Notes: generated by a model from the letters alone, not told the origin. Counted from the stretch's first letter, positions 14,071 through 64,000 are shown. The stretch is DNA of 64,000 bases from Tubulanus polymorphus (GCF_964204645.1 NC_134035.1:13424451-13488450); one strand, 5' to 3'. A program made the numbers and translations.

Positions 14071-14860
14071 GAAATCTCACGGGTGATTGTTTGAAGAATG
14101 GGTCGATGTTTGATGGAGATATGTTTGAATATCCCCTGTCGGGTTAGAGCGTATCTCACTCGATCGCTCCCCTCTCTCTCTCTCTCTCCTCTCTCTCTCC
14201 CTCTCTCTCGTTGTGTCAATGGGGGAAATTGAAATAATGGAAAGAATTGAAACAAAAACAGCAAAACAGGATACGATTTCTCGTTCAGAAAATCTCGCCA
14301 TAAATCAGTCCAACAGAAAGCAGCAAAATTAAGAGTTCAGCAAAGTGCAATATTTCCAGAACAAAAACATGGTATATGCAGGGCTGATTGTAAATCATAA
14401 AGGAACGATATAATCTAATTATAGCAAAAATACATATTTTTTGTATTTTGTATTTTTTCCTTAGAATTCTTTTATCCCTGACGCGCTCATGAAATACCTT
14501 ATATCTAATCGACGAGCTCGTCGAATAAACTTATACTAAATCGAGGACTCTGAAACTCAGAGTAATTTCGACCACCCAATCTCATAAAACGATAACTTCG
14601 AATTCCGATTTTAAAACTCAATCCCCTGTTTCGCTCCCGGCAGGTGTGGTGCGGGCTAGTAGAGGGATACTAAATCATGACAAATTTGGAGAACAATCCC
14701 TACTTCAAGATCAAAACGAAGAGGGACCGGAGTGGATGATAGTCTCGGTTGTATCGACGGACGACCTATAGAACCGCTGCAGATTGTTGAATCACAGGCC
14801 CCAATTGCATACGATATAAACCGTTAATTCATACAAATTCCAAAAAATAAAAACGAAGAT

Positions 14861-15061
14861 TAGACGATAGGATACACAATATCCGTGTGTGATGATAACG
14901 AGAGAAATCCCACAATAACGAAGCCAAGATTGAAAAATTCTATATCAGAATGATTATATTTGAGGAGGCGACATTTCGGCTAACAACTGTTGGCCATCAT
15001 CAGGCATTCTGATATAGAATTTTTCTCAATCTTGTCTTCGTTATTGTGGGATTTCTCTCGT
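14861..15061 (-). mobile_element. Penelope-type fold-back insertion with one minimal hammerhead ribozyme
   Basis: 13-bp direct repeat TAAAAACGAAGAT at 14848-14860 and 15062-15074; inverted arms; minus-strand CTGATGA-T-GGCCAACAGTTGTTAGCC-GAAATGTC at 15005-14968. Confidence 0.8.
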
Positions 15062-18000
15062 TAAAAACGAAGATGTGTTCATTAAAAGTTTGAAAATTTA
15101 AGATTTATTGTGCCAGGTCTCTCGCTAGAGACCGTGTGGTGTGTGCGTCATCTACTGGTATAGTATAATCATGGACTCTAAATCGTTTTAGAGTCCATGG
15201 TATAATCGTTTGGCAATGTCGCCTGGTTACAGAAAGGTCACGTGAATATGTATAGCACCTGTTCTATTGTTAGAAAGACTTCACACAACACAGAAAGTCA
15301 AACAAACAGGAAGATCTAATTTGACTATATATGTGTCCCTGGGCTGATTACTATACAACGTGTCAAATTCAATCTATCTTCAAAACTACTTAATTATTGA
15401 AATACTTTATGCAAATAGGCGGAAATTTACATATATACTTTCAGATTAAGAGTTGCGTTCAAGCGAGGACTTAGAATGTTAAAAGCAGTTTTAGACTTTC
15501 AAATTAATGGAGATTATAGAAGCCTTTCACTGAGACGTGGAGGAAAATGATAATATCAAAACCCACTCAATATCTCACTATGTACAAATATAAAAGATTA
15601 AAAAAGTTAAAGAAATTTATTTATCGAATCACGAATTAAAAAGAAGATATATCTGAGTGTGAGGTTCATATAGTTTATCGAGTTATTAATACTAACAAAT
15701 ATTAAACTATTATTTGCGACAGAGTTCTAATCGTGAAACTGTGTAAATTACAAAGCAAACACGTCAATATAAGGTATTATTACTGAAGCGAGTGACTAGG
15801 ACCTGTCAGGACCTGTCAGGACCTGTCAACAAACAATCTAAAGTGATAATTGTTATGATATGACAGCTGTGCTATACGCGCTGTAACCAGTTATCAGTAA
15901 TAAAACATTGATTAATATTTATTCATTAGACATCAGTATTGAGAGACTTATCGGCCATACGGGCTGTGACGGGCTAGGGGTGGCTGATAGGCCCACCTCG
16001 GATCTATCGAGAACAGTACTCTAGTCCTCTAGATCAAAATCATGTTTTCAAAAATAATAAGAATTTCTATAAACGTTAATGTTACTCCTGATATGACGTA
16101 TATAATAGTTAATAGTAATCTCATTAAATAGAAAACTCTCAATGTCGTTATTAATTAACATTGCGGCAGTAATTAGTTCCATCTCTGCAATTCTTATGAA
16201 TTTTCCTTGGCTTTTTTATTTTCCTTGGCCATATTTTTCCGGCCCTACAATCGATTGATGAAGCTTTCTGGAGCCTCGTGACTCAATTCGCAGTCGTTTA
16301 GGTATTCTGAACATTTCTACTCCCATAACTAGATGTCATCTTCCCCAGTTAAACCCCTGCAGCCAGCCAGACCCCGGGCGGGCCGGTTCCATAGTGAGGG
16401 CTTAGACTTAAGACCGTTCTAAGACCAACTTAGTTCTATAGCAAATCTAACAACTTAAGACCAGTCTTATTAAAGATTTAACACCGCTTTTGGTCTTAAG
16501 TCTTGACTATGGAACCAGCCCCAGCAGATTACTTAAGTTGACTTTTCAAGACCGAATATGAGTTAAGTCCGATCTTAAGCTAACTATGGCCCGGTTAAAT
16601 CGAGCGAATCTCGCTATTATTTTCTCTCCACATTTTGGCGAAGAAAATCGACCAGAACTTTTCTCCCCCTCTTAGCAACCGGTGAAATATTGAGACATAT
16701 GGCTAATACGCGACGGATGACATCCTGCAGCCTGGGAGGCTGGTGTTGATGAGACTGATTTGTGATTTTAGAGCGCGCGTTGCTAAGAATCACATTTCTA
16801 CCCCGTAAAAGGACTCGTCGCGTATTTCGGTTGTCAGCGCGCATGGAAACCACTGATCGGATCCGAGGTCGTCGGGTCGAGCCTAGCAGGTGTTTCGACT
16901 CGGCCCTGTGTATACGCGAGTAGCGCAATGACAGAGGCATTCTTAGCGGCAGCTATCTATACGCCGGAGTTAATGCCATTCTACGTCATTAGACTCTGCT
17001 TTCATACGTAATTCTCAAAAGGTCAACAACATTTCGAATTAAAAGAAACATATGGCGACAATAGAATTATAGAGTTATTAAGGCTCTCTATAGCCGCGGA
17101 CACCAGGAAGCGATTTCTAATTTGTTCCGTGTTTATTCCCCGACTAATTCTCGGTAATTTCTCTACCCGGAAAACATTTTCATAAAACAAGGATCCGAAG
17201 GTTCGGCGTTTAGATAATTGTCCTGGCCGATTCTGGGAAGAGATTGATAAACGCAAGCTGACGCGCCCCATCCCCAAATAAACTCCACTTATTGAAACCT
17301 GGCACTCGCTGAAACGATCCCGATATCAAACTATAATCTAGTTGCTCCATACTTTTAAAAAGCCTGCTCCATTTATGATACAATGAATTTGACGTCAGGG
17401 GTTGATTACTGAACAGACTGGACCCAGTTTTTCATATAGTAAATTTTCACAAGCCTTGATTTTGTCAATGAAGAGAACAATAATTGTTCTCTTAGCAATT
17501 ATTGTTTATCAGTCATTTTCGTATACATAATCTATGCTATCTAATTCTCAGTATTTCCAACTGGTAATTTCTATCCATGACATTTTTACCTCTGACATTT
17601 TTACCAATACCGATATGAGTTCTCGGTGTAAAGTTTCGGTCCAAGAAATAATTGAATCTTGAATCAAATTGTAACTACTGAGAACCGTACTATCACCATT
17701 CTAGCGCGGGAATAGATCAGCTTAAAAGTGAAAATCATCAGTTCATTGTTTAAAGTTGATTTCAACTCAGAGCTGAAGAGCTTTATTGCAGATAACTTTG
17801 GTCACACGAGATTGTTTTAAATTATAAAACGATCGTTTTAGAATCTATGGTTTCAATATCATTATGCACGACTGCAGTATTTTTGACCAGCCTATCAAAG
17901 AGCCACCTTAACACTTCGAATTTTTCGATTTCAATTTATTCATCCTCCAGGTATAGGTTCTCACACAGGGATCTAAAACTTCAGATATAGCAGGGAGGTG

Positions 18001-50632: not shown

Positions 50633-53571
50633 ATGTGGCGCCTCGTCCATCAACTACTGAAAATTCGCGTATTACAACTTATGGTTTTATTTGATAGTTC
50701 GCTGACAGTAACGTCAGGTAGGTAAAAATACAGTGCCCAGTCGCACAGTCGCATGGCTTCGATCTCTAACACCAGTCTTTGACCAACTTGATTCTTTAGC
50801 CAATCTAACAACTAAAGATCGGTCTTAAGATGATTTAAGACCACTTTTGGACTTCGGTCACGACTGTGCAACCGGGCTCAGGGTTCATAGGTCCATAAGT
50901 TCTACCAAAATTCGCAGTTGTAATTTCACCCTCGTGTTAAAACATTTTTACTTATTATGAACTAATTTTTACTCAGTCAATACTAAACCAGTCCGACAAC
51001 TGTGGAACTGTGACGATGGAATAAGAATATAATGAAACATCATTTAGATACAGCTGCGGATGATGGAATATTTTTGTGTCTATTTCCGCAGAATGTCGAG
51101 TCGAAGATCCAGTAGAATTAGAAGCGAGGGCGGCTCCGCAATTTCTACAGTCTCCAAATTATCCGTTTTTCTATAAACCGTACGTAATTATAACTCCTTC
51201 AGAAAATATGGCGACCTCCTAGATCCCCCTATGACATCACTAACGCACTGTCCAACATATCTTACATTCTGATAAGGCTCAAGCCCTGGTAAGCGAGGGT
51301 GGTGGGTTATAACGGGTTTTTGCCGAATCTGATATTACAGTTTGACCTACTGTAGATGGATACTGAAAGCAAAGGAGAGTCACGTGATAACCGTTGAGGT
51401 ACTCGACACTGATACGGAGGGCAGTCCGACTTGTAACAAAGACTTCATCGAGATCAGAGACGGTACGAATATATCAATCGCGATTTTAAACTATATCAAA
51501 GTCGTTTTGAGGCAGTTAATTTGATTTCAAATTGAAAGGTTCCACGATTCTGAATTTGACATACAATTTTTGGATCCATTCCCGCTAGTAAAGATTTGAC
51601 TCCTTTTTAGTTGTAAGTAGCTTCATGAACATGAGAACAATTCTACAGTGTTACAGTGTATAAATATGCTTTTGAGTCTTTTGAAAAGACATTATTAGCA
51701 AATATTTGACTCCTGATAAAAAAATTAAATAATTTTGATTTAGATCCAAATCTTGTTGATGTTCATTTATTTCACATTGAAAGGTAAATACCAGTGGGAC
51801 TACGCGTTACGTCGCTGGTGCGGAAATAAACTACCAGCGAATTTTACCGGCTACAAAGACGCCATGTTTGTGACGTTTAAAACGGACGACAGTGAACAGG
51901 GGCGTGGCTTCAGATTCAAATACTGGTCGACACCAAAACGTAAGAAATAACTTCTAGCAGGGATCGATGGATCAAGGAAAATTGGGGTCCAGGGGCCGGT
52001 TCCATAGTCGAGACTAAAGTCCCGAAAGTGGTCTTAAATCTTAAGACTGGTCTTAAGTTGATAGATTGGCTATAGAACTAAGATAGTTTTAGACTGGTCT
52101 TTAGTCTAAGCTATGGCTATGGAACCGGCCCCAGAAGACAAGAAACGGCATTTCTCGAATTAAGCAGCCATCATATCAATGGCCACCAGCGGGGCTCTCC
52201 CTCGGTATTAGACCTTTTTGTAAAAATGTCAAAGCAATTTCCGAATTTGCAGGTTTTCTGCGATCTCTGTCTTGTCATAAAGGGCAACCTCACTGGAAGG
52301 GGCCCATCCCTTAATTCCGTCCCTGTTCTAATGCTCAAAACATTTCGAACCAATTTTAACAGTTATTAGTTTGATTAACTAGACTAGCCTACTCTTAATA
52401 AATCTATGTCACGACAATGCAGCTGATTCCGGTTGGACCGGTTGCATAGTCATGGCTTAGACTTAAGACCTGTCTAAGACCAACTTAGTTCTTTAGCCAA
52501 ACTAACAACTTAAGACCAGTCTTAAGATTTAAGACCACTTTTGGACTTAAGTCACGACTGTGCAACTGGCCCATTAGCGGCCTTTCATCCCTCGAAAAGT
52601 AACCTATATGGAAATTCATACATCAGCATCGTCTAGTTGGAAACGGATGAAGGTGACATGTGTCACTTCAACGAGACTTTCATATCATTCTAATTCCAGA
52701 TTTATAAATATAAGTCACGACACCTGAATCGTGGAGTTTTAGATTAGTGGCCTTTCATCCCTCGAGGGGATCTGTACGCAATAGGGAAATCTATCAGCAT
52801 CGTCTAGTTGGAAACGGATGAGGGTGGCAGAGTCTCGCGATGCCATCGGGTTCGATTGCCAGCGATGGAGGAACATGACAAGATGCTATCCGGTTTGAAG
52901 CCCTGCCGACGAAGGTTGAGCTTCAAACCGAAAAAAAAACGCGCCATGTGTCACCTCAACGAGACTTTTATATAGAATACAATATATTTCATTGCTCACA
53001 AAATTACATTTGCTTAGAGCAAAAAGACAATACAACATGAATGTCAATCCAATCCAATACAATATGTATCACTAGAACGATGACCACACTCAAACGTGGT
53101 GAACGGATAATAAGATAAAATCCCACTATTTACAGATTAAAAGAATTTAAAAACAAGAATTTATTTATTAAATCTCTACGATGATGACGATGATCTCTAG
53201 GGTGAGTTCGAAACGTCGTGTCTTTTATATATTTAAGATTTAATAAATAAATTCTGGTTTTTAATTTCTTTAATCTGTAAATAGTGGGATTTTATCTTAA
53301 TATATATCATTCTATAATTTCAGATTTAATGCAATATAAACAGGTCGAGTTCCGCGCAGTGAATTATTTCCTGATGGCGCTGTCGGCCACGTTACTGGTG
53401 TCAGTGTTAACCACGTGTACAGTCATCTGGATAAACCGATCAGCTTCCAACTCGCAACGGCTCCTGCGATTTAACAGAAAAATATTCAACACTCCCGCCG
53501 TAGATTCCTCGGTTTCGGTCGACCAGACGCACAGAATAACGATTCATTCCGATTGCGAGTCGAACGCGTAG
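50633..53571 (+). CDS. Single-CUB-domain type I membrane protein, 5 exons, 232 aa
   Basis: Exons 50633-50717, 51092-51179, 51341-51462, 51784-51939, 53324-53571. CUB motifs SPNYP, CRWIL, CNKDFIEIRDG, WCG, FKTDDSEQGRGF; TM YFLMALSATLLVSVLTTCTVIWI. Confidence 0.85.
53072..53298 (+). mobile_element. Penelope-type fold-back insertion with a 5'-damaged hammerhead
   Basis: Direct repeat AATAT(G/A)TATCA at 53061-53071 and 53299-53309; inverted arms ATAAAATCCCACTATTTACAG; centre (A)TGACGA-T-GATCTC-TAGGGT-GAGTTC-GAAACGTC. Confidence 0.72.
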
Positions 53572-54767: not shown

Positions 54768-56082
54768 TTACACGGAGGTGTTTTGAAATAGTTTTAACGT
54801 GCTACTACTAGTTACATTGTCCGTCGAGTTCGCTGTAGATATCTGATGTAAAGATTCATCGGTCTAAAAAAAAAATAGAAACATAGAACATAATCTACTA
54901 CTCTACTGCGATTATAACAAGTTGATCGTCCCTTCATTATGTAGAATTTGAAGAATGCAGAAGAAAGAGTCCGCCCAAGGAAGTTAAGGGGTCAGGTCAG
55001 TTAACAGGGGCCTGACACAAACCCGGTAGTTTTTATCTTATAGTACCTGTACTGAATAAACCTCTGATAGTTTAGGCATAACGTCTACGATGTCATCGGA
55101 AGTTGGTTTGCGTCTTTTAGCTTTCTGCCATTCTTTATATTTACAAGTGAAATGAATCCCGCATGATCCGCCGATCACCAACACGACGAATATATACGAG
55201 ATGACGTTGATAATGATTACATCTCGATGCGAGACTTTTAGATCTTTTTCGATTACTGTTGCATTTGTCGGGTTCGTTACGTTAGACGAACCGTAAACAA
55301 TCTGAAAAATCGTAAATATGAAGTCCTTTGTAATGCCAATGAAAAACACGGCGTTATAACGAATTTGGCAGCTGTAAGCCTAGCGCACATCGACACTGCG
55401 ATTGGAGACAACTAGTTGCTACCGAACGATTACCCCGCGCACATCGAAATCTAGTTACAACCGGTCAGTTGCAGCAACTGCATGGCGCGCGTGTCGATCG
55501 TCGAGATCCAGAGTGCGCACATCTACGGATATGACTGCGATTGAGTACAACCAGTTGCTCAAAAGTAGAACATGGGCAACTGGCTGGAACTGGAGATAGA
55601 TCGACGCTTACCTATCGTAAGCTCGCTCACATCGACACATTCAAGCAACTGATCGTATCCAGCCAGTTCCTCTCATGCGCCGAAAACTGCCTTGCAACTA
55701 GTTGTCTCCAATCGCAGTGTCGATGTGCGCTAGGCTTTATAAAGAATGGTAAATCCATTGAATCTGAGTTAGATTGGGTAAATTCGTTCTCTAAAAAGTG
55801 AACAGTGGCATTATACAGGTTGGCAGCGGTATCGAACTTCGACCGAATAGCGCTGTCATTTCTTAGGTATAATTCTTATCAGTTTTTACAAAACCTAAAT
55901 AAGGACAATTCTCAGATTTTCGACCAACTCAAACAACATTGAGATAACAGATTGTGATTAGCTTTTGATGAAACTGGATTCAGTATCGTAAATTCAAACC
56001 ACTTAACTTAGTGTAAAACTTTGAAACCTACCCTGCTCATCAGCGTTACAATTCCTAACACTGCGCATAGACGTGACAGCAT
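54768..56082 (-). CDS. Small uncharacterised type I membrane glycoprotein, 3 coding exons, ~133 aa
   Basis: Exons 56082-56032, 55301-55047 (alternative donor 55062), 54863-54768, all phase 0. Signal peptide MLSRLCAVLGIVTLMSRIVYG, NVT/NAT sequons, TM VIIINVISYIFVVLVIGGSCGIHFTC, basic stop-transfer, C-terminus -NTSV. Confidence 0.7.
55377..55736. mobile_element. Harbinger-like MITE with ~43-bp TIRs
   Basis: AGCCTAGCGCACATCGACACTGCGATTGGAGACAACTAGTTGC and its exact reverse complement, with TWA-like flanks. Confidence 0.88.
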
Positions 56083-57177
56083 CCTAAAGAATTTTATAGG
56101 AAAAAATAATTCGAACTATTTAGAACATTTTGACGATACTTTGCCAGAGAAAGAAACAGTTGAAGACATTTTCGTGAGGTCATAGTTATTGATTATATTC
56201 ATTCTTAATTATTCAGAAACAATATTCAGACTTCACATCTCTCAACCTTGGCGTACCGACCCCTGATATTCGTATACTATACCAGCCACATAAGGATCAG
56301 GGGAGCGACTGCAGTTTAGGTGTCCCTAATGGTTATGTACCTAACCTTACCGTAACACTATTCTTTAAACACTAGTGCCACCCAGTGGATAGGTGACCCC
56401 AACTGCAGTTACACCGGATCCGGTTCCCCAGTTATGGCTCATGGCTCAGATTTAAGACCATCTTAGCGCTAACGCCGATCTTAAGACCGCTAAGACAGCA
56501 GGTCGCGACTTTGCCCTGAGCTTAAACATTATCACGATTTCCTAGCGTTATCGCGAAATGAAATTGATCCGAATTTTTTATCGCTTTTTCAACATTAGAA
56601 AAAAACAGATAACTGCAGGATATATTCACAGTGCTAGACTAATACATGTTATTTTCACACTTACTTGCCACCAGTCCCAGCACCCGCGGGTAAAACCATG
56701 ATCTCCTTGGTAAGGCGTATACTATAGACCAAGGTACTCTATATATATATATACCCCTATTGTATTCAATAATATGTACTTGTATTATTCAAGACGATTT
56801 GCCCGTTTCACCTGCATATATACAGGGTGACGATGGGTCACGTGACCGCCTCTAGTGAGTGCCCTCGAATAGTTTACTGTTGTTGTTAAACCAGTTCTAT
56901 ATTTGCAGTGTGTATATTTTACCGCGCAGTGCCGGTCTTTGTGCTTTAGGGGGGAGGGGGGGGGGGGAGAATTATTCGTGCATTAGCATTGAAACTTATA
57001 CGCTGGCAAGTCGAATATCAATTAGCATTACCTAATATAGATCGAGTATTTACACAGTCGTCTCTTGTAGGGTCCTAGCACACCCAGTAAGTACCGTGTT
57101 GCTGGGTTTTCTGTAGCTTGACGCAGATTCGGCGTTTAGCTAGTTATATAGATAGATAGAATATATTGTTCGGTATT

Positions 57178-57420
57178 AGTAAAATCCCACAATAAATGAA
57201 TTAAATGATAAGATGTTTATTTAAAACATATAAGAAATATTTCGGGTGGTTACTACCACCCTTCTTCAGTCTAAAATGACTTTTAGACTGAAGAAGGGTG
57301 GTAGTAACCACCCGAAATATTTCTCATATGTTTTAAATAAACATTTTATCATATAATTCTTTTATTGTGGGATTGTACTCGTATCGTTTTATCACGGATA
57401 TTGTGATCTGCAATTGATTC
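57178..57420. mobile_element. Penelope-type fold-back insertion with two inverted minimal hammerhead ribozymes
   Basis: 13-bp TSD ATTGTTCGGTATT (57165-57177 and 57421-57433); near-perfect palindrome centred on 57277-57280. Confidence 0.85.
57285..57324 (+). ncRNA. Minimal type I hammerhead ribozyme motif (mirror copy on - strand at 57272-57233)
   Basis: AGA-CTGAAGA-A-GGGTGGT-AGTA-ACCACCC-GAAA-TAT-T-TCT: CUGANGA core, 7-bp stem II, GAAA, palindromic stem III region, 3-bp stem I. Confidence 0.72.
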
Positions 57421-57659
57421 ATTGTTCGGTATTGTTTAAGTCAGTTAACAAAATGCGGAATTGTACCAGAACGAAGCTGCTGCTCCTAATCTCCATTGGT
57501 ATGACGAGCAACCACCTCTACTTGACGTAGGAGAATTTTTCTTGTTCTTTGACTATTAAGGGATGATAATGCTGAATAGAGGACGTACAGGGGTGTCCCG
57601 GGTTCGAACCCAGGAATAACTGATCCTGATCCCGAGTGAAGCACTATTATTGTGTATCA

Positions 57660-58775
57660 TCAATTTGCAGATTTTAAATTTGGACCGCGGCAGGCCGGTT
57701 TGTTACATTTTAACTGTTTAACAGCGAGTCTGAATTTATTATTTGATAAGCAATAAACGATAAAGTTCATACATGAATCTACGACGGTCATTCCGATACC
57801 GATTTTACGCCGAATCATCAGTGTTTCTACACCAGTCAGATTTCCATAATAAACCCAAACTATTCCAAGAAAACCGAAATACTGTAGCTTTTCTAGAAAT
57901 AGCACTGATTCGCAGGCGATGTACACGGCCACTAATGCCAATGACATTCGTAAAACACGCAATTCTAATGTGTTAGTGGCGCGGCTTTTAGAACGAGTTT
58001 TACCGACACTAGAAACTTTAACGACGATTAAAACTACGATTAAAGATATATTTATAACACCCAGTGAGACCATTGGAGCCATGATGCTCATTGTTATAAA
58101 TATCCAGCCTTGCGATAGACGTTTCCACGTATCAACAAACGCAGGGTAAACTATAACATGGGTTCGTCTTATAGTTGGGGGGTTGTGAATACAGGGTACT
58201 GGTTTGAAGGCTCGATCCGGTAGAAATATCACAAAACAAAAACAAAAACTAAACAAACATAACACACCTATTATAGAATTCACTACTTTTCGAGTCCAAA
58301 ACAATCTGGATTTTAACGGGAAAACTGTAATAACGAGTCTTTCCAAACTGACGAGAATGACGCACCAGTTTCGTATTAATTGAAACGCATTATAAGGCGC
58401 CAATGCAGTTATAATGAATTCCCAACCAAAATACCAATCATCCGCACGTAAAATGACGTCACCTAAATGTATATAGAGATGCATTGCGCGTAGAGGGTAC
58501 ATCACGAATACGGTTGTCGAATAACATATGTCGAAAATAGCGAGAACTTTGATTAAATGATACACTTCATTGTTCATCTTCTTTAACACTAGAAGCGTTA
58601 TGATATTCAAAATGATACCGAGTATTGTGACTGGTCCGTAAAAGAAGATGTACATATATATGCTGAACCGATATTGCCAGTGTATTCCCATGGTACTCCG
58701 TATATGGTCACATTCTCCAGAGTAGGTTCTTACAGTTGGCGACAGAACAGTGGTAACGTTTGAAGAACTCATCAT
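57660..58775 (-). CDS. Rhodopsin-class peptide GPCR (FMRFamide-receptor-like clade), intronless, 371 aa
   Basis: Seven hydrophobic segments; GIILNIITL (TM1), LAIFD (TM2), SLERL (DRY variant), CES (TM6), DSCMNFIVYC (TM7); N-terminal NVT sequon. Confidence 0.9.
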   Translation of the reverse strand: MMSSSNVTTVLSPTVRTYSGECDHIRSTMGIHWQYRFSIYMYIFFYGPVTILGIILNIITLLVLKKMNNEVYHLIKVLAIFDICYSTTVFVMYPLRAMHLYIHLGDVILRADDWYFGWEFIITALAPYNAFQLIRNWCVILVSLERLVITVFPLKSRLFWTRKVVNSIIGVLCLFSFCFCFVIFLPDRAFKPVPCIHNPPTIRRTHVIVYPAFVDTWKRLSQGWIFITMSIMAPMVSLGVINISLIVVLIVVKVSSVGKTRSKSRATNTLELRVLRMSLALVAVYIACESVLFLEKLQYFGFLGIVWVYYGNLTGVETLMIRRKIGIGMTVVDSCMNFIVYCLSNNKFRLAVKQLKCNKPACRGPNLKSAN

Positions 58776-63696: not shown

Positions 63697-64000
63697 CTAT
63701 AAACGAATTCAGAAAATATCTCAATTGATGATATTTGATTAACAGTTAATTTTGATAGTTTCGATGATCTTTATAAACAGTTAATTTTGATAGTTTCGAA
63801 AAGTTTTGAATGAATAACTCATCAGAGAAACTACAATGATTTTCATCATTTCATGATTTTCAAAACATCGAAAATGCAAAAAATAAACTGTTACATCATA
63901 TTAGGGATGAGGAGAGAATCCCACAATGATAATAAAAAGTCCGAAAATGAAACTTCGAGACAGTAGTTTATTTCAACGTTTATTTCTCAGTATTCCTGAA

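Follow-up and report, generated by a model that had tools for sequence, protein, structure and literature searches.

The 243-bp insert that lies between positions 57178 and 57420 of the window (the whole 64-kb stretch of DNA analysed here) is very probably the result of one integration event of a canonical endonuclease-bearing (EN+) Penelope-like element (PLE), family 1, in which the last ~105 nt of the element were copied twice, head-to-head. It is a textbook though minimal PLE product, common in this genome, and all of its structural features have already been published for PLEs. For annotation, we recommend that the insert be masked as PLE debris and not classed as a new ribozyme element. 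A first-pass annotation of the window had offered two readings, a mobile ORF-less unit or an extremely truncated PLE insertion. The latter is supported by the continuity of the arms with an element encoding a reverse transcriptase (RT) and a GIY-YIG endonuclease, by the minimal-hammerhead anatomy, by the one-sided tail and by target-site duplications (TSDs) of variable length.

The insert is bracketed by an exact 13-bp direct repeat, ATTGTTCGGTATT, at 57165-57177 and 57421-57433, which confirms the duplication and insert length reported in the first-pass annotation. The near-perfect palindrome described there is also present: an inverted repeat (57171-57276 and 57281-57386) has 106-nt arms that are 92% complementary and separated by a 4-nt spacer, and the RNA of the whole region folds as a single long hairpin (-155 kcal/mol, z = -22.6). 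The inverted repeat enters the left TSD copy by ~6 nt (TATTAGT versus the usual ATACGAGT), so the terminal ~6 nt of that copy may belong to the left arm as well, and the left boundary of the insert could be off by as much as 6 nt. The window copy has neither an ORF nor an upstream promoter region, and no tandem repeat was found at the locus.

The left arm (57178-57278, minus strand) reproduces, in antisense orientation, the final ~100 nt of a family-1 PLE, reaching the “no-tail” 3' end, in the same register as the 3' UTR that follows the RT and GIY-YIG ORF of the genomic copy L035. The right arm (57279-57385, plus strand) is the same PLE 3' end in sense orientation, as placed by comparison of the inverted repeat and of genome copies. 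Within each arm the order is CTGAAGA-A-GGGTGGT-AGTA-ACCACCC-GAAA-TATT, then AATAAA, then TTATTGTGGGATT, i.e., the hammerhead core followed by AATAAA that had been noted earlier. Beside the no-tail 3' end is the box ATTGTGGGATT (57364-57374, plus; mirror copy at 57183-57193, minus), which is common to PLE families 1, 2 and 3 and is matched 9 times in the window, where 1.85 matches would be expected. The extra tail seen in the first reading is real as well: it is ~35 nt long (57386-57420, plus), extends the right arm only, carries a CACGGATATTGTG box at 57393-57405, and is seen in sister copies.

Each arm holds a motif that matches the published metazoan PLE minimal hammerhead in every hallmark feature. 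The left-arm motif occupies 57228-57276 (minus), with a predicted scissile bond at 57236/57235, and scores 73 bits (E 6e-14) with the covariance model R1; the right-arm motif occupies 57281-57329 (plus) and scores 72 bits. Its parts on the plus strand are CUGAAGA (57288-57294), one unpaired A (57295), a 7-bp helix II closed by G10.1-C11.1 (GGGUGGU/ACCACCC; 57296-57302 and 57307-57313), GAAA (57314-57317), a palindromic UA at 15.2/16.2 (57318-57319) and U16.1-U17 (57320-57321), with the predicted cut between 57321 and 57322. Helix III is absent and helix I is short (UCU/AGA, 3 bp). When a 49-nt single arm is folded, the MFE structure has helix I (3 bp) and helix II (7 bp), with the core open.

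A hammerhead covariance search, one of the checks proposed in the first-pass annotation, gave a divided answer: R1 scored both arms highly, and the Rfam 15 hammerhead models had no match at E values up to 10 (cmscan, 56000-58600). The lack of an Rfam hammerhead match is expected for a motif without helix III. Rfam generic hairpin/miRNA and snoRNA models did give matches in the same interval, but these were far below their gathering scores and were rejected as artefacts of the long palindrome.

Two further PLE families have the same core with other helix sequences. In family 2 it occupies the corresponding position of the pLTR and has an unpaired U, helix II GACUAU/AUAGUC, a different helix I of 6 bp, and CG at 15.2/16.2. 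The family-3 core lies within the window itself (14962-15010, minus) and combines an unpaired U and helix II GGCCAAC/GUUAGCC with UG at 15.2/16.2 and a GUC triplet. From family 1 to family 2, both sides have changed in 7/13 pairs, a count to be read against few independent events because three lineages were compared; paired cells amount to 84.6%, versus 34-49% when the partners are slid. This is good support, though from only three lineages, for a conserved structured motif, with cleavage as its predicted activity.

Metazoan PLE minimal hammerheads, the ribozymes normally present in the pLTRs of these elements, share with the insert a type I topology that lacks helix III, the boxes CUGANGA and GAAA, the 7-bp helix II with G10.1-C11.1, the unpaired nucleotide between A9 and G10.1, the palindromic 15.2/16.2 (UA), U16.1-H17 and the short helix I (PMC4209133). 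The same study describes “dual min-HHRs on opposite strands 100-700 bp apart” (Cervera & De la Pena 2014) and found these ribozymes to be barely active in vitro, and then only as dimers. The family-1 motif, a predicted ribozyme, differs in having a helix I of just 3 contiguous base pairs (6 bp in family 2). A further difference is that the two motifs of the insert can pair with each other, and an RNA that covers both arms would therefore be predicted to form a ~106-bp hairpin instead of two ribozymes.

The origin of the arms comes from a search with the insert of the window's own genome (268 Mb), as the first-pass annotation had advised. It returned at least 92 matches: about 15 loci hold the whole palindrome, and many more have the right arm and tail alone. 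At the single-arm loci the similarity extends hundreds of bases upstream, into longer elements, and one of these, L035 (5676-6956), encodes RVT_1 and GIY-YIG domains in an ORF whose stop lies 60 nt before the start of the arm. Its GIY-YIG score (26.3 bits) is above the cut-off, and its RVT_1 score (28 bits) is just under, the copy being truncated. Because the arms are continuous with the 3' UTR of this ORF, they are the last ~105 nt of a canonical EN+ PLE.

Two cysteines between GIY and YIG are typical of Penelope-like elements. By inspection, family 1 has them in GVYKINCSDCNLFYIG and family 2 in GIYKIPCKVCDKVYIG, with histidines downstream. The CX2-5CxxC linker is absent from the L035 product, again by inspection, and it is by this one character, not by a phylogeny, that family 1 is assigned to the canonical EN+ (Penelope/Poseidon-type) clade of PLEs. 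Among the 98 of 1482 candidates scored, none had an intact full-length family-1 ORF, the longest open frame being 438 aa, and the source element is therefore known from fragments only.

Family 2, a sister family with 59% identity at the amino-acid level, has an intact 802-aa ORF with RVT_1 and GIY-YIG both above cut-off, and many of its intact-ORF copies have the classical pLTR-ORF-pLTR layout. It also has two alternative 3' ends, 37 nt apart, i.e., an optional 37-nt tail with the same CACGGATATTGTG box; this box and ATTGTGGGATT are both common to families 1 and 2. All of these element comparisons were pairwise or column-wise. Related PLEs are thus present in the genome as families 1-3, where their absence would have spoken against the first-pass reading.

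Family 2 looks recently active. Dozens of its copies, on many contigs of the assembly G000 (L052-L066), have open frames of 800-833 aa and nearly identical pLTRs, and several stand in nested or inverted clusters (e.g., C12:8.927-8.937 Mb).

The first-pass annotation took the insert as the type example of a family, and one of its two readings was a mobile ORF-less unit, which the sister copies do not support. On that reading, the whole 243-bp palindrome would transpose as a unit, an ORF-less pair of inverted pLTRs being copied as such. Many similar-sized copies do match the whole query at 82-96%, and the centres of L001 and L002 are identical, though flipped relative to the tail. However, in an alignment of 15 independent mini-palindromes, the differences at the centre go beyond point mutations in nearly all copies: the arms end anywhere from -3 to about -30 from the core, and the fillers between them are 0-25 nt long. 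Centres that are identical together with their flanks occur only in local or segmental duplicates (L005/L007 and L018/L026). A perfect hairpin RNA would, in addition, be a poor template for an RT. Transposition of the palindrome as a unit is therefore very improbable.

Nor do the mini-palindromes have a lineage of their own, since the subfamily variants A, B and C are each present both in minis and in ORF-bearing copies. Between the two arms of a copy, private differences (~93 overall) greatly outnumber shared ones (~9), and 20 of 21 pairs differ mostly or only at private sites; in L003 the arms have 0/95 mismatches. Because arm differences are mostly private, both arms of a copy derive from one source and were identical at birth. 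The window copy, whose 7/96 arm differences (~7% divergence) place it among the older copies, is the one exception in the 21 pairs, with 3 shared and 4 private differences. With three of its seven differences at family-polymorphic sites, it could have been made from two slightly different templates. The palindrome is not a mobile unit, and the insert is best seen as a dead-on-arrival by-product of PLE integration. The label “retrozyme-like”, which the first-pass annotation had attached to the mobile unit, fares no better, given that a tandem arrangement is absent.

The TSDs of the sister copies tell against a DNA transposon. Abutting the same boundaries as in the window copy, 11/13 independent sister copies have their own 9-15-nt TSD (allowing up to one mismatch), and in a control with mismatched flank pairs the mean repeat was 6.4 nt, with 2.4% reaching 10 nt, so the duplications are not due to chance. 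Overall, the TSDs measure 9-16 nt; in two copies none abuts the ends, and L018 has a displaced 16-nt repeat. Inverted arms inside a short direct repeat do give the insert a superficial likeness to an ordinary MITE, i.e., a DNA-transposon derivative with terminal inverted repeats. Such an element would not be expected to have arms that are the 3' UTR of an RT and GIY-YIG retroelement, asymmetric ends with a tail on one side, an arm length that varies from ~57 to 793 nt among copies, or a TSD that varies in length and is at times missing. We consider this origin refuted by the RT and GIY-YIG continuity and the variable TSDs, with next to no probability left to it; the first-pass annotation had named MITE-like behaviour with a TSD of fixed length as evidence against itself, and the copies behave otherwise.

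The palindrome most likely formed by priming on both target strands, a mechanism carried over from published in vitro work on one vertebrate PLE. The purified Anolis PLE protein cleaves and extends both strands of its target, and it initiates reverse transcription at two internal positions separated by the length of the tail (Frangieh et al. 2024, PMC11167929). By analogy, the family-1 protein would nick both target strands and prime a cDNA from each, with each cDNA starting at one of two alternative internal sites of the RNA, spaced by the length of the tail. The left, antisense arm would stop at the inner 3' end, and the right, sense arm would include the ~35-nt tail and stop at the outer 3' end. 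The two short cDNAs would then meet and be joined at the centre, and staggering of the target nicks would account for the 13-bp duplication. Priming from both nicks would put the antisense copy on the left, the sense copy on the right and the 5' side of the RNA in the centre, which matches the observed layout.

Several features of the copies agree with this scheme. When R1 was scanned over the genome and pairs were counted from the listed family-1 and family-2 motifs, at least 35 head-to-head (-/+) pairs were found, and no tail-to-tail (+/-) pair was among the motifs listed; the same scan also lists an inverted truncated copy followed by pLTR-ORF-pLTR, the classical PLE layout illustrated in Craig et al. 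2021 and Arkhipova et al. 2013. The tail (~35-37 nt) is on exactly one arm in all 15 minis and in all the long head-to-head copies examined. An inverted 5'-truncated copy and a one-sided tail of 30-40 bp are both known for PLEs (PMC8557442). Exceptionless head-to-head order, a single tail, single-source arms and clustered arm 5' ends are the predictions of the recently proposed mode of integration that uses both strands and two start sites. Families 1 and 2 also have an ATTGTG box, a possible determinant of initiation, at 15-18 nt upstream of either alternative 3' end.

A less probable route, though one that keeps some weight, has the same PLE origin and differs in how the palindrome arose: by self-priming, in which a single cDNA (or antisense template) would fold back at a terminal micro-palindrome and copy itself. 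Self-priming or snap-back would yield the same final structure, and it would make the arms of a copy essentially identical at birth, in line with the zero to few private differences seen; some centres, e.g., in L004 and L010, contain small extra palindromic fillers; and it has been argued for rotifer Penelope elements on the basis of palindromes found where inverted copies join (Arkhipova et al. 2013, PMC3846280). However, self-priming on a sense template predicts tail-to-tail repeats, of which none is listed, and self-priming alone does not account for a tail on exactly one arm. Inspection by hand of the centre junction of the window copy gave no convincing snap-back or microhomology pairing. 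Cleavage and extension of both strands have been directly demonstrated in vitro (PMC11167929). Priming on both strands is our preferred mechanism, with self-priming as a less probable rival for the joining step.

The 5' ends of the arms may carry information about the template RNA. In longer copies the truncation points are scattered over 1.4 kb. Short arms behave differently among the 40-150 candidates scored: among the family-1 head-to-head pairs listed, 12/22 meet within 10 nt of the 5' edge of the motif, and, counted from C3, the short arms of listed copies end at -7 in 11 cases and at -8 to -13 in a further 11 to 12. Several minis have one arm ending at -7 and its partner at -10 to -13. 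This clustering, 7-13 nt upstream of the ribozyme core, points to a discrete 5' end of the template RNA there. In the solo arm L040, TTTTAGAC is repeated three times at the 5' end, which is what template jumps at an RNA terminus would give.

Such a discrete end would probably be the start of pLTR transcription. The clustered arm ends carry TCATTTT, 10 nt upstream of the hammerhead core, which fits an initiator, and in family 2 a TCA stands immediately 5' of the hammerhead, with TATATATA 31 nt upstream. A TATA and Inr pair is known from rotifer pLTRs (PMC3846280). The arms may thus be full-length copies of a short pLTR transcript and not random truncations. More specifically, and tentatively, the mini-palindromes could be full-length cDNAs of a ~110-145-nt pLTR RNA that runs from the Inr-like TCATTTT start to either RT entry site. 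If true, pLTR RNA alone would be a natural minimal substrate for PLE integration, and the mini-inserts would be in vivo footprints of symmetric two-strand priming, strictly with one tailed and one untailed end.

One could go a step further and propose that a ~145-nt pLTR RNA is a self-sustaining, non-autonomous SINE- or retrozyme-like element, transcribed from the minis themselves and mobilised in trans by the PLE, with the palindrome as its normal form of insertion. The clustering of arm 5' ends at the Inr-like TCATTTT fits this proposal, as does the number of minis (at least 15 of family 1, with others in families 2 and 3). In rotifers, pLTRs alone suffice for trans-mobilisation (PMC3846280), and it has been proposed that animal retrozymes derive from PLEs. 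On the other side, the minis have no private diagnostic variants, A, B and C each including ORF-bearing copies; the arms begin at the putative start, with the other arm taking the place of the TATA-like upstream region; and tandem arrays are absent. We regard self-sustained propagation as unlikely and prefer a PLE by-product.

Among known systems, the closest are canonical EN+ PLEs of the Penelope/Poseidon type (Evgen'ev & Arkhipova 2005; PMC3846280; PMC8557442), which have in common with the window insert heavy 5' truncation, a head-to-head inverted 5'-truncated copy, a 30-40-bp tail at one end, variable TSDs and a TATA/Inr-like pLTR promoter. Compared with their insertions, the window insert is extreme: it has no ORF, and both arms are ~105 nt and abut each other. 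The system of the Anolis protein (PMC11167929) shares with the families described here alternative 3' ends ~35-37 nt apart that define the tail, and the head-to-head geometry agrees with the outcome expected of priming on both nicked strands, with the mechanism carried over by analogy. Animal non-LTR retrozymes (Cervera & de la Pena 2020; Li et al. 2026, doi 10.64898/2026.07.22.740005) are likewise small, ORF-less, hammerhead-bearing and PLE-related. However, they are head-to-tail tandem repeats thought to amplify via circular RNA, whereas the window insert consists of one inverted pair inside a TSD, is not arrayed in tandem and has no separate lineage. As a whole, the mini-insertions form a tidy natural data set for PLE biology, one that also suggests that the template RNA began at a defined position shortly before the hammerhead.

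The insert may also bear on a neighbouring gene. An intronless 371-aa ORF (57660-58775, minus; ORF and Pfam scan), given here as context, has ~7 hydrophobic segments and ends 227 bp from the insert, close to the ~240 bp given in the first-pass annotation, which called it a GPCR. That identity is plausible in the sense of a 7TM receptor, as judged from the hydrophobic segments, but the sole Pfam match, 7TM_GPCR_Srx, is sub-threshold (E 0.002). With its ERL and NFIVY motifs, the product may be a divergent, lineage-specific chemoreceptor-type GPCR.

A hexamer scan placed the first AATAAA 3' of the 7TM ORF stop at 57361-57366 (minus) and the second at 57216-57221 (minus). Both lie inside the insert and there is none elsewhere within 560 nt of the stop, in agreement with the earlier remark that the insert offers AATAAA on that strand. 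For the 7TM gene, every canonical poly(A) hexamer within 560 nt past the stop is therefore supplied by the insert, which also contains a potential 106-bp hairpin. Either could possibly matter for the 3' end of the gene or for dsRNA, and we treat both as candidate effects. DNA contigs from samples X1 and X2 bridge both insertion junctions, and among the joints listed from DNA contigs and reads none was an empty-site joint skipping the insert, which is not proof of fixation.

The window contains at least four other insertions of PLE debris, including those at 14861-15061, 53107-53303 and 63917-64000. The first is a family-3 mini-insertion (14848-15074 with its duplications) between copies of a 13-bp TSD, TAAAAACGAAGAT (14848-14860 and 15062-15074). 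Its inverted arms are unequal, the shorter (~57 nt) being without a ribozyme; the tail is one-sided and has CACGGATATTGTG; and its single minimal hammerhead (14962-15010, minus) reads CUGAUGA-U-GGCCAAC..GUUAGCC-GAAA-UG-UC. The insert at 53107-53303, probably a fourth PLE family, has inverted arms (49 nt at 90%, with inner arms of 36 nt at 94%) and ATAGTGGGATT boxes at both ends, and its central ~60 nt contain no clear canonical hammerhead core. The third, at 63917-64000 (minus), is a family-2 PLE 3' end without the tail, cut by the end of the window.

Two further observations concern the immediate surroundings of the insert. Between it and the 7TM ORF stop lies a lone ~70-nt monomer (57569-57638) of a ~76-bp satellite, where read depth is 100-250x the unique level; at other loci its monomers stand in tandem arrays, most of which are close to contig ends (726 first-look candidates). 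A tRNA was considered for this high-copy stretch and none was found there, the stretch being the satellite monomer. On the other side, 200 bp to the left of the insert, is a G-rich run at 56948-56969 (AGGGGGG three times, ~19 G).
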